NCBI GenBank assembly: GCA_002269645.1
Contig: NIVC01002857.1
Span: 1-64,000, forward strand
Length of the DNA: 64,000 bases
Source: Macrostomum lignano
Lineage: Eukaryota
Reading direction: 5' to 3'
The notes under the pieces were generated by a model. The model worked only from the letters and a program-made list of their open reading frames with translations. It searched no databases and was not told the origin of the DNA. Shown here one piece after another: positions 486 to 43,946 of the stretch; the stretch's first letter is position 1, and each line of letters opens with the position of its first letter. Made by a program: the position numbers and the translations under genes.

Positions 486-1346
486 GGCCCAAGCTATCGC
501 AAGAATACGCCAAGCAGATTTAGCAAGTGCAACGCGATGAAAATCATCTATGCAGTGAACAAAAATCACCATGAATCTCGACATGACGCCTGCACCAAGC
601 AGATCCGCAAGGTGTTTAGCAGCCAGGGCTTGAATGACATCCTAAACTGCCTGGTTGCACCTGAGCAGATGAAAGCTGGCTGACATCCAACTGGATGAAA
701 GCTGGCTCCACCTGGATGGCAAGGGCAGCAAGGCAGATAATCGCTGCTGGTTGGGAGCTGGGGACTTCAGGCCGATGGTGACTAGGAAGTCCATCTCGGA
801 CAAGAAGACCATGCTGCTGGTAGCCTTCACGCCAAACAAACGAGTCTCCATCTGCACAACTCCACCGAACATCAAGGTCGATGGCCAGTATTTTATCGAC
901 TTTTTCCGGCACACTGGGGACCTCTGGTGCACTCTCCGGTCAAATCTATGTCACCTGGACGAGGTTCTGTGGCAGCTGGACACCGCACGGCTGCACACCT
1001 GAAGGCTGTTTCGAATTTTCTGCCTGCACGGCAAGTGAATCTGCTCTGACAGTCCCTACAGCCCAGACTTCAACTTTTGCAAGAGATTCCTGTTCAAATG
1101 GCTGAAGGCTGACTTTTCCAAGAAGAGTTTCGCAAACCATGAAGAAGTAAAACAGGCTGCGTTGCACTGGTTATGGCAGTTGGAGGAAAAACACCTGCAG
1201 GCTGAGGTGGACAAGCTGTATGAGCACTGCCAGAGGGTGATTGATATTGGGGGACTCTATGTTGTTGAGTGGTACAGTTTTGTTCATCTGCGATTGCAAG
1301 TTCGTCTGTTTTCACATCAGTGACATTACTTATGACACACCCGAAG
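486..1346 (+). mobile_element. Mariner (Tc1/mariner) remnant, 5'-truncated at the duplication breakpoint
   Basis: Transposase motifs (D)ESW, WQLDTARLH (HDNARPH-like) and SPYSPDF (YSPDL-like). One TIR, CAGTGACATTACTTATGACACACCCGAAG, at 1318-1346 followed by TA. Confidence 0.9.
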
Positions 1347-1735
1347 TACAGTTGCTGGTAAAAGAGACACAGAGGTTTTTTGCATGCACGGTTTCAACTG
1401 CCAATTATTGAGGGTTTGTTTTGAGAATCTCTATGAAATCTGGTAAGCATAAGCACTATTGTAGTGTGTACGGTGTGCCTTAATTCTTGAGCTTGAACTT
1501 GTAATAACTGTCATTACCGAAAGGTAAACATGTTATAATTATGAATCGGACATTAAATATGACAAATTAATAAGCACTTTTAAATGAGGAGACGTTTGCT
1601 AGAGTGGACGTTGGCGGAAATCTCTCGATGAATGCTGTGTATGACTATAACGTTCATTAACTAGTTACTGAGGCATCAAACCGTGCAGTGTTTGCTGATG
1701 TATTCGATGAGTTTTGCATATTGATTGAATTCAGC

Positions 1736-4700
1736 TCAAAATTCGGTCACTCCTGCTCTTGAGACCAGTTCTGACTGTTGATGCGGCTGCTGCTCAGCGT
1801 GTGATGCCGAGTTGCCATTGCTCAGAGTCTGCCTATTGAACTGCTGCTGAATCTGCTTGAGCTCCTTGACTCTGGCAGCCGAGTCTACTCGCTCCTCGCG
1901 AATCAAATCCGATTGTTGTTGATCTTGATCCTGTTCACTTTCGGCGCCGCCCTCCGTGACTGCCGCAGAGGCAGCTGGCTGCTGCAGCATTTTGTCGCGA
2001 ATTCGTTGAAACTTGGCGTTGTGCGACAGCTCGTCTGTTCGTGAGAAGATTTGGAAACAATATATCGTCAAATGACATGTTCAATCAAAGTTTAAACTTT
2101 GGCCTTCTTGTTGTACTTTTTCGACCTTTCCAGAATGACAGCTCGCAGCGTCCCTTGAGTATAGAGGGAACAGGTTTGTCGGAAAAAGTACGAGTATTAA
2201 TGGAGAGCGACAACGCTTAAAACAAGAATTGTGGTTTTTAAACGGTTGTTTTTTGCGTAGCGTCGAATGGGGTTTAGCCATTATAAACAAAATTGGTCTA
2301 ATAAAATAATATTATTAATAATCTAACAAAAGATTGCACTAAAGAGATAGGAACAGCTGATAGTTTGCTGGAGCTTGACTTGTCTGCCGTTTGAATCAGT
2401 TCAACAACATGCCAAGGACTAGCTACTCAAGTACAATACATGTAGGACAATATAAAAATTGTCATTGCCTTTGATAGGAGGCAGATCCAGTGTTCATCTT
2501 TTGATATGTATTGCCTTTCTTAAACCTCTATTGATATTCATAAAGCTTTTCGATTGGAAAATTGTGATTCTGTGGTAATTTTTTATCCTTGCGTACAATC
2601 TTAGATCTGTACTGTGTCTGAATGGATGGCACAGCTAGGCTCATTGGCTTTATGAATCTATTTTTTCATTCTCTAATACGCATCTTGTTCACAGTAATTA
2701 AGCTAAGAATTAAAAAAACCAACTAAGTCGAGTTGTGCCATTTTTATGACTCTTAGGAGTAGGACATGTGCGTAGGATAAATTATATTAATAATAATAAT
2801 TGATTACACCTGCCCTTATGGCCAGATGTGCAGCCGACAGCTCAGGCGCAGCTATTGCTTCAGCGTCTGAAGGCTGCGTACGGCTGTTCAGTCCAAGGAC
2901 TGGGGGAGGGGGTCGCCACACAGCCTCAATTACCCCAGCTAAAGCTGGCAACCATTTTACAGCTGGGTGAGCTGAAGCAATGCAGAGTTAAGTGTCTTGC
3001 TCAAGGACACAAATTGTTCCAAGTGGGTCGAGAATCGAACCCCCGACGTTTCAGTCGTGAATTCAATGCTCTAACCACTAGGCTAAAACCCCCTAAAGTA
3101 GAGTAGGATAAAAATGAACATGGAATCCTAATATCCTGAGCAAAAAGCTTTATGAATATCAATAGAGCTACAAGGCAAAACATATCAAAAGATGAACACT
3201 GGATCTGCCTCCTATCAAAGGCAATAACAATTTTTGTGCTGAAAAATGAAAAATTCTTGTCTCAGTAGTGTATTTTTTGGTAAAACCGGCCTCCAATAAC
3301 GTTGTTCCAAGAAACGTACTTTCCCGTCCTTCTAATTGAGCAGTCCTTGCAGCATGCTAACACAACTCTCACCTTGCTTTTCTTTAACTGCATTCCTTTC
3401 CAATCGGTAGGTTCTGGGGGCATCCCCGCCGCCGCCAGTTCCTTGCTGCTGCTGGTGCTGCTGATTGACTCTGGCCTGCTGATTAGCCCGAATTGTGGCT
3501 CTGATTGCTTCGAATGGATCCGGAGCCTCTTGACGCTGCTGCTGCTGACGGTTTCGGCTCATGGTTGAGCTCGACCGACCGCCCAGCTGCTGCTGCGGAC
3601 TGTTCAGCCGCTGGAAGGCGGGCACCGCGCCGCCGAAGCGAAGGTCGCTGACACTACTAGATAAACGCGGCGGGTTGCGCGGCTGCGTCAGGAACTGCTG
3701 CTGCTGCGGCGGCGGCGGCGGGGCGGCTGATGCTGCTGCTGTTGTTGATGATGGTTGTTGCTGTTGCTGTTGTTGTATGAGACGCCTGGGAGTCTCATTG
3801 GAGCGGCCTGTTGGTGTACTCCGGCTGTGTGTGCGATGTGAAAATGCTTGTATTATATTGACTGCGTGGAGCCCCTGGCACCCAAAGTGAATGGAGCCCC
3901 TGGCACCCAAAGTGAATGGAGCCCCTGGCACCCAAAGTGAATGGAGCCCCTGGCACCCAAAGTGAATGGAGCCCCTGGCACCCAAAGTGAATGGAGCCCC
4001 TGGCACCCAAAGTGAATGGAGCCCCTGGCACCCAAAGTGAATGGAGCCCCTGGCACCCAAAGTGAATGGAGCCCCTGGCACCCAAAGTGAATGGAGCCCC
4101 TGGCACCCAAAGTGAATGGAGCCCCTGGCACCCAAAGTGAATGGAGCCCCTGGCACCCAAAGTGAATGGAGCCCCTGGCACCCAAAGTGAATGGAGCCCC
4201 TGGCACCCAAAGTGAATGGAGCCCCTGGCACCCAAAGTGACTGGAGCCCCTGGCACCCAAAGTGAATGGAGCCCCTGGCACCCAAAGTGAATGGAGCCCC
4301 TGGCACCCAAAGTGACTGGAGCCCCTGGCACCCAAAGTGAATGGAGCCCCTGGCACCCAAAGTGAATGGAGCCCCTGGCACCCCCAAACTGAATGGAGCC
4401 ACTGGTACCCCCAAAGTGAATGAAGCCACTGGTACCCCCAAACTGAATGGAGCCACTGGTACCCCCAAAGTGAATGAAGCCACTGGTACCCCCAAAGTGA
4501 ATGGAGCCACTGGTACCCCCAAAGTGAATGGAGCCCCTGGCACCCAAAGTGAATGGAGCCCCTGGTACTCCCAAAGTAGAGCCCCTGACGCCCAAAGAAG
4601 CCCGGCTACCTGAATCTAACAGCGTCATCAGCGCCACGCATAAAAAGTTTTACACTGAATTTCCCCATTGAAGGCCTTCCTAGCTAATACGAGTAACAGA

Positions 4701-42584: not shown

Positions 42585-42973
42585 GCTGAATTCAATCAAT
42601 ATGCAAAACTCATCGAATACATCAGCAAACACTGCACGGTTTGATGCCTCAGTAACTAGTTAATGAACGTTATAGTCATACACAGCATTCATCGAGAGAT
42701 TTCCGCCAACGTCCACTCTAGCAAACGTCTCCTCATTTAAAAGTGCTAATTAATTTGTCATATTTAATGTCCGATTCATAATTATAACATGTTTACCTTT
42801 CGGTAATGACAGTTATTACAAGTTCAAGCTCAAGAATTAAGGCACACCGTACACACTACAATAGTGCTTATGCTTACCAGATTTCATAGAGATTCTCAAA
42901 ACAAACCCTCAATAATTGGCAGTTGAAACCGTGCATGCAAAAAACCTCTGTGTCTCTTTTACCAGCAACTGTA

Positions 42974-43946
42974 CTTCGGGTGTGTCATAAGTAATGTCAC
43001 TGATGTGAAAACAGACGAACTTGCAATCGCAGATGAACAAAACTGTACCACTCAACAACATAGAGTCCCCCAATATCAATCACCCTCTGGCAGTGCTCAT
43101 ACAGCTTGTCCACCTCAGCCTGCAGGTGTTTTTCCTCCAACTGCCATAACCAGTGCAACGCAGCCTGTTTTACTTCTTCATGGTTTGCGAAACTCTTCTT
43201 GGAAAAGTCAGCCTTCAGCCATTTGAACAGGAATCTCTTGCAAAAGTTGAAGTCTGGGCTGTAGGGACTGTCAGAGCAGATTCACTTGCCGTGCAGGCAG
43301 AAAATTCGAAACAGCCTTCAGGTGTGCAGCCGTGCGGTGTCCAGCTGCCACAGAACCTCGTCCAGGTGACATAGATTTGACCGGAGAGTGCACCAGAGGT
43401 CCCCAGTGTGCCGGAAAAAGTCGATAAAATACTGGCCATCGACCTTGATGTTCGGTGGAGTTGTGCAGATGGAGACTCGTTTGTTTGGCGTGAAGGCTAC
43501 CAGCAGCATGGTCTTCTTGTCCGAGATGGACTTCCTAGTCACCATCGGCCTGAAGTCCCCAGCTCCCAACCAGCAGCGATTATCTGCCTTGCTGCCCTTG
43601 CCATCCAGGTGGAGCCAGCTTTCATCCTCAGCAACCAGGCAGTTTAGGATGTCATTCAAGCCCTGGCTGCTAAACACCTTGCGGATCTGCTTGGTGCAGG
43701 CGTCATGTCGAGATTCATGGTGATTTTTGTTCACTGCATAGATGATTTTTCATCGCGTTGCACTTGCTAAATCTGCTTGGCGTATTCTTGCGATAGCTTG
43801 GGCCGGCCATAAACAACCTATGCACGTCTCAAATGCACTGCTATTGCTTCACTAAGTATACTTTGCAGCTACACTACCCACAAGTCCATGTGCCTACATA
43901 TTTTAGACAGAGGCCTGCAGTGACATTACTTATGACACACCCGAAG
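42974..43946 (-). mobile_element. Mariner element with both 29-bp TIRs and TA target duplications, 973 bp, internally deleted/defective
   Basis: TA(42972-73)+CTTCGGGTGTGTCATAAGTAATGTCACTG ... CAGTGACATTACTTATGACACACCCGAAG+TA(43947-48). ORF 43318-43734 contains LVAEDESW and WQLDTARLH followed by a premature stop. Confidence 0.93.

Follow-up and report, generated by a model that had tools for sequence, protein, structure and literature searches.

A probable head-to-head misjoin behind a 17 kb inverted duplication in the Macrostomum lignano assembly

The start of scaffold NIVC01002857.1 (134,873 base pairs [bp]) in the Macrostomum lignano assembly GCA_002269645.1 contains what looks like a large palindrome: two arms of about 17 kb face each other in inverted orientation, and both carry copies of a PDZ-domain gene and of a gene for a Rolling-stone (Rost) family membrane protein. 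We analysed bases 1-64000 of this scaffold, called the window below, so that position 1 is also base 1 of the scaffold. An exact look-up of the RYBP/YAF2 ORF (47192-48145) returned identical coordinates on this scaffold, and the position of the Rost gene agrees. The G+C content of the window is 44.9%, and it includes a single run of N, the 740 N scaffolding gap that separates the arms. The comparisons described below indicate that the duplication is very probably an assembly artefact, in which overlapping versions of one locus were joined head to head across that gap.

The assembly, Mlig_3_7, was built from PacBio contigs made with Canu 1.4; after Pilon polishing, SSPACE linked these into scaffolds on the basis of paired-end and mate-pair data (PMC5730564). 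The line DV1 has 2n = 9-10, with the large chromosome in extra copies (PMC5730564). About 85% of the M. lignano genome exists as three diverged copies (‘haplovariants’), as judged by read depth (Zadesenets et al. 2023, PMC10733133). The same study reports that the majority of four-copy blocks in Mlig_3_7 show just 3-fold read depth and that multiple mapping affects 93% of read pairs in this genome.

For brevity, the part of the window before the gap (1-25849) is called contig A and the part from 26590 onward contig B. All copies of the locus compared here come from this one assembly. Three of them were reached through the Rost protein and members of its cluster: the end of scaffold NIVC01001839.1 (1839; sequence L003), the start of NIVC01003475.1 (3475; L004) and the interior of NIVC01001378.1 (1378; L005). 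RYBP paralogues lead to a further sequence from the interior of 1378 (L007) and to the start of NIVC01000163.1 (163; L008). The right flank from 43805 is called Y, and the unique sequence that lies past a 63-bp repeat on the other side of the locus is called Z.

The inverted arms and their genes

Self-comparison of the window gives a left arm of 17,458 bp and a right arm of 17,215 bp, a match far above chance; the longest ungapped block between the two is 3,404 bp long and 100% identical (Table 1 lists the coordinates of these and all other features). The initial annotation had described two near-identical inverted arms across a gap and a spacer of about 8 kb, with the right arm beginning exactly at the gap and inside a satellite, and both descriptions are confirmed. 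The first base after the N run is the start of the right arm and lies about 160 bp into a satellite with a 40-bp unit, which in the left copy occupies 17784-18822 (1,040 bp). The edges of the gap are unrelated tandem repeats, with the 63-bp unit on the left and the 40-bp satellite on the right. When both edges were compared, neither continuity nor an open frame across the gap was found, and the open reading frames (ORFs) listed as crossing it were discarded, since they read through N. The gap is the sole link between the two contigs. Contig A, which carries the left arm, is 25,849 bp long and is the terminal contig at the start of the scaffold.

The Rost gene of the left arm encodes an intact protein of 388 amino acids (aa). 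An exact look-up of the 304-aa Rost ORF gave no match, because the annotated gene has an additional upstream exon. In the right arm the second Rost copy is annotated as truncated, and the single cause is a homopolymer difference, CCC to CC, at 28736. The Rost copy on scaffold 1839, otherwise identical DNA, encodes the intact 388-aa protein; the truncation of PAA54810.1 is due solely to a homopolymer length error in the redundant contig.

The PDZ gene has its PDZ exon at 12008-12253 (Pfam PDZ, E 2e-8) and probably ends near 3335. Its first exon lies in the stretch that would form the spacer of the palindrome, and therefore the copy in the right arm lacks exon 1. A homology search with the 251-aa glutamine-rich exon (8149-8904) as the query yielded a single UniRef fragment of 156 aa and not the PDZ protein. 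The window holds more than 12 minisatellite arrays, several of them within introns of the PDZ gene. Two arrays of the same tetranucleotide, (TCTA)n at 10724-11059 and (TAGA)n at 22970-23799, lie 12 kb apart in opposite orientations, with a further copy in the right arm at 33478-33813; such opposed arrays are a possible source of ambiguous read-pair placement.

Table 1. Features of the window, in window coordinates
Feature	Position	Strand	Basis or remark
Right-hand 485 bp of a 3.2 kb transposon; start of scaffold and contig A	1..485	+	99.2% identity to L007 16819-17303
Left arm, part of contig A	486..17943	+	Self-comparison
Tc1/mariner-like element, copy in contig A	486..1347	+	First ~140 bp split off by transposon insertion
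PDZ-domain gene, annotated product 577 aa	3335..22416	-	Exon 1 with ATG near 22416; gene calls, open frames
Lone substitution-dense block between the arms	5075..7842	+	~44 substitutions and small indels; diagnostic sites separating the copies
46-bp minisatellite	5840..6297	+	Scaffold 1839 ends within it (equivalent of 6203); scaffold 3475 starts ~400 bp inward (equivalent of 6691)
Rost gene, intact, 388 aa, PAA54808-type	14192..16178	+	Pfam PF21534, E 8e-12
‘Spacer’: rest of the 40-bp satellite, exon 1 of the PDZ gene, several minisatellites, (TAGA)n array, to end of contig A	17944..25849	+	
63-bp GC-rich tandem repeat	25675..25849	+	Contig A stops in it after 2.8 copies; visibly error-rich
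Scaffolding gap, 740 N	25850..26589	.	N run and assembly method; size estimated by SSPACE
Right arm, first 17.2 kb of contig B	26590..43804	-	Self-comparison
Second Rost copy, annotated as truncated, 236 aa	28706..30236	-	PAA54810.1, ‘Mlig016093g3’
Degenerate Tc1/mariner-like element, 975 bp, across the outer edge of the right arm	42973..43947	-	Terminal inverted repeats and TA
Right flank Y: 41-bp and 32-bp satellites, RYBP/YAF2 gene, mobile-element fragments, lipase genes	43805..64000	+	Same order beside the arm in scaffold 1378
RYBP/YAF2 gene	47192..48145	-	
hAT-like ORF fragment	50033..50800		DUF4371
Non-long-terminal-repeat retrotransposon fragment	55113..56740		Endonuclease and reverse-transcriptase remnants
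Two tandem pancreatic-lipase-family genes	58672..60018 and 63203..63670		Pfam Lipase, E 1e-56 and 2e-18

Differences between the arms were counted by BLAST traceback and in ungapped blocks, with those in 4577-6193 taken from a MAFFT alignment. In left-arm coordinates there are 2 substitutions in 486-5074 (at 1572 and 3681), about 44 (1.6%) in 5075-7842, none in 7843-16743 and about 10 in 16744-17917, the part that corresponds to the last 1.2 kb of contig B. A first MAFFT alignment contained 28 ‘substitutions’ and paired 90- and 105-bp indels in minisatellites with 21-bp and 45-bp units; these were set aside as register artefacts, the ungapped alignment there being 100% identical. Nearly all 1-bp indels between the arms lie within homopolymers, and even sequences with zero substitutions show about 2 homopolymer indels per kb, as expected of separate noisy consensuses of identical DNA. 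Repeat arrays differ as well: a 25-bp array has 27.5 copies in the left arm versus 31.5 in the right, and the 46-bp array is shorter by 319 bp in the right arm. Each arm is thus a consensus in its own right, with some noise; as the initial annotation had already recognized from substitutions and repeat numbers, they are not one consensus printed twice.

Other copies of the locus and its boundaries

The copy on scaffold 1839 begins at the equivalent of 6203, stays collinear with the window across the arm and all of the ‘spacer’ up to 25849, and extends further. Compared with the right arm, it has no substitution over 10.6 kb (window 38364-27797) and differs only in the last 1.2 kb of contig B. 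Compared with contig A, it has 25 substitution sites in 6235-7842, identical to the sites where A differs from B, and one substitution over 7843-25849. The copy on scaffold 3475 shows no substitution against contig A over 6691-11055, the A-specific sites included, and 2-9% divergence beyond that. At the diagnostic sites of the substitution-dense block, scaffold 1839 agrees with the right arm and scaffold 3475 with the left. Over 7843-11863 all four of the near-identical copies lack substitutions. The interior copy on 1378 (L005) is 93-97% identical throughout.

The ‘spacer’ is present and collinear in the copies on 3475 and 1378, too. In all three of these other copies the 63-bp repeat extends past the point where contig A ends, to about 5.5 to 7.5 copies; those on 1839 and 1378 pass from the repeat into the unique sequence Z, and the sequence examined from 3475 ends within the repeat. 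Z was not found in the window. No inverted matches of at least 400 bp were found within or between L003, L004, L005 and L007. Scaffold 1378 gives the order lipase, RYBP, PDZ gene, Rost gene and then unique sequence, and the same gene order follows from contig B together with the end of scaffold 1839. A single coherent locus also results when the reverse complement of 486-25849 is continued at 43805, as had been proposed for the window; this arrangement matches the interior copy on scaffold 1378.

The outer limit of the arms can be understood from the same scaffold. There, the sequence matching 1-485 of the window runs unbroken into the arm at the equivalent of 486, and the possibility that these 485 bases are a chimeric read overhang was ruled out, the same junction being present in scaffold 1378 at 99.2% identity. 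The complete transposon on 1378 (L007 14079-17303, 3,225 bp) has 257-bp terminal inverted repeats that are 96% alike and encodes an intact 671-aa ORF, for which Pfam returned only noise up to E = 10 and no PDB sequence match was found. Window 230-486 also matches the opposite end of the transposon in reverse (L007 14081-14337), and no second copy of 1-485 was found elsewhere in the window. On 1378 the Y flank ends at L007 14078, the exact equivalent of 43805, and is followed by the transposon and then by the arm. The transposon, nested in a mariner-like element, is thus present in the copy of contig A and on scaffold 1378 and absent from contig B. Homology between the arms stops at 486/43804 because contig A ends 485 bp inside a transposon that contig B lacks. 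The outer homology limit (485/486, 43804/43805) is accordingly a transposon insertion site and not a duplication breakpoint, and by homology the contig A copy probably continues into a Y-type flank of its own, like a separate whole-locus copy and unlike a local duplication broken at 486. The empty site in contig B (43801-43808, GGCC/GGCC) has a few extra bases, which could be an excision footprint and would in that case hint at recent activity of the transposon.

The mariner-like element that harbours this site had been taken for a complete mariner. It does have both inverted ends, perfect terminal inverted repeats of 29-30 bp (42973-43002 and 43918-43947), and TA flanks it at either end; at 975 bp, however, it is degenerate and has no open transposase frame. 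The frame is interrupted by stops, and the sole Pfam match, to DDE_3, is weak (E 0.036; 14.4 bits with a cut-off of 28.6). An autonomous mariner is about 1.3 kb long, longer than the 975-bp element. A private insertion of 31 bp, which partially duplicates GATGAAAGCTGGCT, is found at 657-692 in the contig A copy of the element. Neither contig B nor scaffold 1378 has this insertion, which may be genuine or may stem from an error close to the end of the contig.

Assembled sequences at the locus end as follows: scaffold 1839 in the 46-bp minisatellite, 3475 about 400 bp from it, 163 in the 32-bp satellite and contig B in the 40-bp satellite. As a side observation, every contig or scaffold end at the locus, over five scaffolds, lies in or a few hundred bases from a minisatellite with a unit of 32-63 bp (5840-6297, 17784-18822, 25675-25849 and 46425-47145).

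Copy numbers can then be listed segment by segment. The Y side is present in three copies (contig B, 1378 and 163) and the Z side likewise in three (1839, 3475 and 1378). Between them, 17944-25849 has four copies (A, 1839, 3475 and 1378) and 6691-17943 has five (A, B, 1839, 3475 and 1378). Contig B overlaps the end of scaffold 1839 by 11.8 kb. The pieces can be arranged as three loci: one is the uninterrupted scaffold 1378, the second combines contig B with 1839, and the third runs from 163 through the outer part of contig A to 3475. Three loci is the number expected from the published three-copy state of the genome.

Interpretation of the join

Most likely, the arms are not genomic neighbours, and represent two assembled versions of one locus that is single-copy in each subgenome. 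Read in the orientation of the right arm, this locus would have the order Z, ‘spacer’, arm, Y and would carry the PDZ and Rost genes. The initial annotation had offered two options, a real palindrome and a head-to-head join of overlapping allelic or homeologous contigs, and had inclined to the join; the collinear continuation on 1839, the transposon site and the tiling into three loci support the latter. Where the copies stop, they do so in repeats at the ends of contigs or scaffolds; ploidy predicts the number of loci into which they tile, and each flank is present that many times; and the other copies are collinear and single.

We infer a course of events along the following lines. Canu would break contigs at minisatellites and where copies turn identical, which would yield overlapping, redundant contig ends. 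Contig B would be the same copy as the end of scaffold 1839. Contig A would be a short leftover contig, its outer part (to 7842) derived from the copy that also supplies the start of 3475 and its inner 18 kb identical to the 1839 copy; it would thus be a haplotype-switched consensus or a recombinant variant. We favour a haplotype switch by the assembler, which would be located across 7843-11863. SSPACE may then have attached A, inverted, to the start of B over an estimated 740-bp gap, with most read pairs mapping to several places.

Three points weigh against this account. SSPACE joins need several concordant pairs, and the orientation seen here is not one that ordinary pairs from one collinear locus would produce. 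The last 1.2 kb of contig B has about 10 substitutions that are not seen in 1839, some of them common to 3475 and three private, and B and 1839 could therefore be distinct copies and not one molecule; we read these substitutions as a probable low-quality contig end. Contig A, with an outer part like 3475 and an inner part like 1839, could also be a real fourth variant, given that DV1 has extra large chromosomes. This last point is a sub-question within the artefact explanation: A might be the faithful contig of a fourth, recombinant variant located elsewhere, for example on an extra large DV1 chromosome, and still be falsely joined to B. We regard this as possible but rather doubtful. The combination in A of left-type sites (common to 3475, 6691-7842) with an inner part identical to 1839, the 31-bp insertion private to A (657-692) and the extra large chromosome copies of DV1 (2n = 9-10) would all suit such a variant; the four copies are identical over 7843-11863, however, just the stretch where an assembler can switch haplotype, and the three-copy flanks argue for three loci only.

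Real palindromes have contiguous sequence through both arm-spacer junctions, and each of their arms meets distinct, non-homologous flanks. Here, the right arm abuts the 740 N gap at its inner end, and the outer ends lie at a transposon site, with the Y flank following in 1378. The haplotype of the right arm is not confined to the supposed palindrome either: it runs collinearly into the ‘spacer’ on scaffold 1839. We therefore consider it highly improbable that the window contains a real, recent gene-bearing palindrome of one haplovariant, with asymmetric arms (17.4 kb, and a one-sided extension of 7.9 kb) and a junction hidden in the gap. It is true that SSPACE placed the contigs in this orientation and estimated a size for the gap, but the gap is bordered by two contig ends that lie in unrelated tandem repeats, and the assembly is documented as redundant and error-prone. 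That the arms are independent consensuses with real differences, and that contig B's terminal 1.2 kb is slightly unlike scaffold 1839, would fit a palindrome as well, and so would the lack of substitutions in the inner 8.9 kb, which arm-to-arm gene conversion would produce. Yet the outer ‘breakpoint’ is a transposon site common to the 1378 copy, so that A's copy goes on into its own Y flank; the flanks are present three times rather than four; and none of the other copies (L003, L004, L005 and L007, at inverted repeats of at least 400 bp) is palindromic. For the real palindrome of the initial annotation we found nothing in favour besides the scaffold join itself. Were the join nevertheless correct, which we think very unlikely, one large-chromosome variant in DV1 would carry a very young inverted PDZ-Rost duplication centred in the gap, and the genome would also hold a collinear copy of the same haplotype on 1839. 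Such a duplication would show, caught at one moment, the kind of intrachromosomal rearrangement by which the M. lignano subgenomes are proposed to stay heterozygous.

The copies could also be truly adjacent with contig A misoriented or misplaced, as a local tandem (direct) or nearby segmental duplication. With five assembled copies of 6691-17943 versus three expected, a real extra copy is conceivable, and the join suggests some read-pair support for proximity. This arrangement seems extremely improbable all the same, with exactly three Y flanks and three Z flanks and with pieces that tile into three loci without an extra copy; moreover, most four-copy blocks of this assembly are over-representation by published depth (PMC10733133).

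Under the preferred explanation, a false head-to-head join, the biological weight of the structure is small, as there is most likely no palindrome. The locus can serve instead as a worked example of how a three-copy genome yields false structures in the reference assembly Mlig_3_7. The effects of the artefact would be a spurious extra Rost model, a headless PDZ copy in the right arm and a local copy number raised to 4-5. For a corrected tiling, we suggest that contig B joins 1839 and that the outer part of contig A bridges 163 and 3475. In gene-family counts, knock-out design and studies of rearrangements, 1-25849 is best treated as a misplaced contig.

The right flank and comparison with known systems

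Beyond the arms, the right flank Y holds the satellites, genes and mobile-element fragments listed in Table 1. The first of its two lipase genes is split across two ORFs. The lipase genes hold the same position in scaffolds 1378 and 163.

Among known systems, the window can be compared with the ampliconic palindromes P1-P8 of the human Y chromosome, which have gene-bearing inverted arms of more than 10 kb, about 99% identical or higher, with a spacer. Gene-bearing arms of more than 10 kb, high identity and an intervening spacer are found here as well. The locus differs from P1-P8 in three ways: two contig ends and an unsequenced gap take the place of one junction, the ‘spacer’ simply continues one of the arms, and a transposon indel forms the outer boundary.

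Long-read assemblies can also contain inverted repeats that are artefacts. PacBio fold-backs from missed hairpin adapters lie within one contig, are symmetric about the fold point and have no gap. The window resembles them as a long-read assembly artefact that yields an inverted repeat, but its arms are separate contigs with haplotype-level differences, joined by the scaffolder; a missed-adapter fold-back was ruled out on these grounds.

Redundant haplotigs in heterozygous or polyploid assemblies are addressed by tools such as purge_haplotigs and purge_dups. The redundant haplotigs, homeologous contigs and false joins described for Mlig_3_7 itself (PMC10733133) share several features with the window. 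In both, near-identical copies each end at a contig end, one copy is on a short terminal contig, and the copies differ by patchy blocks of single-nucleotide polymorphisms, changes in repeat number, presence or absence of transposons and homopolymer errors; in both, the flanks are at the expected ploidy and the middle is over-represented. The present case differs in two respects: the redundant contig has also been scaffolded in inverted orientation beside its partner, which mimics a palindrome, and it appears to switch between two haplovariants.

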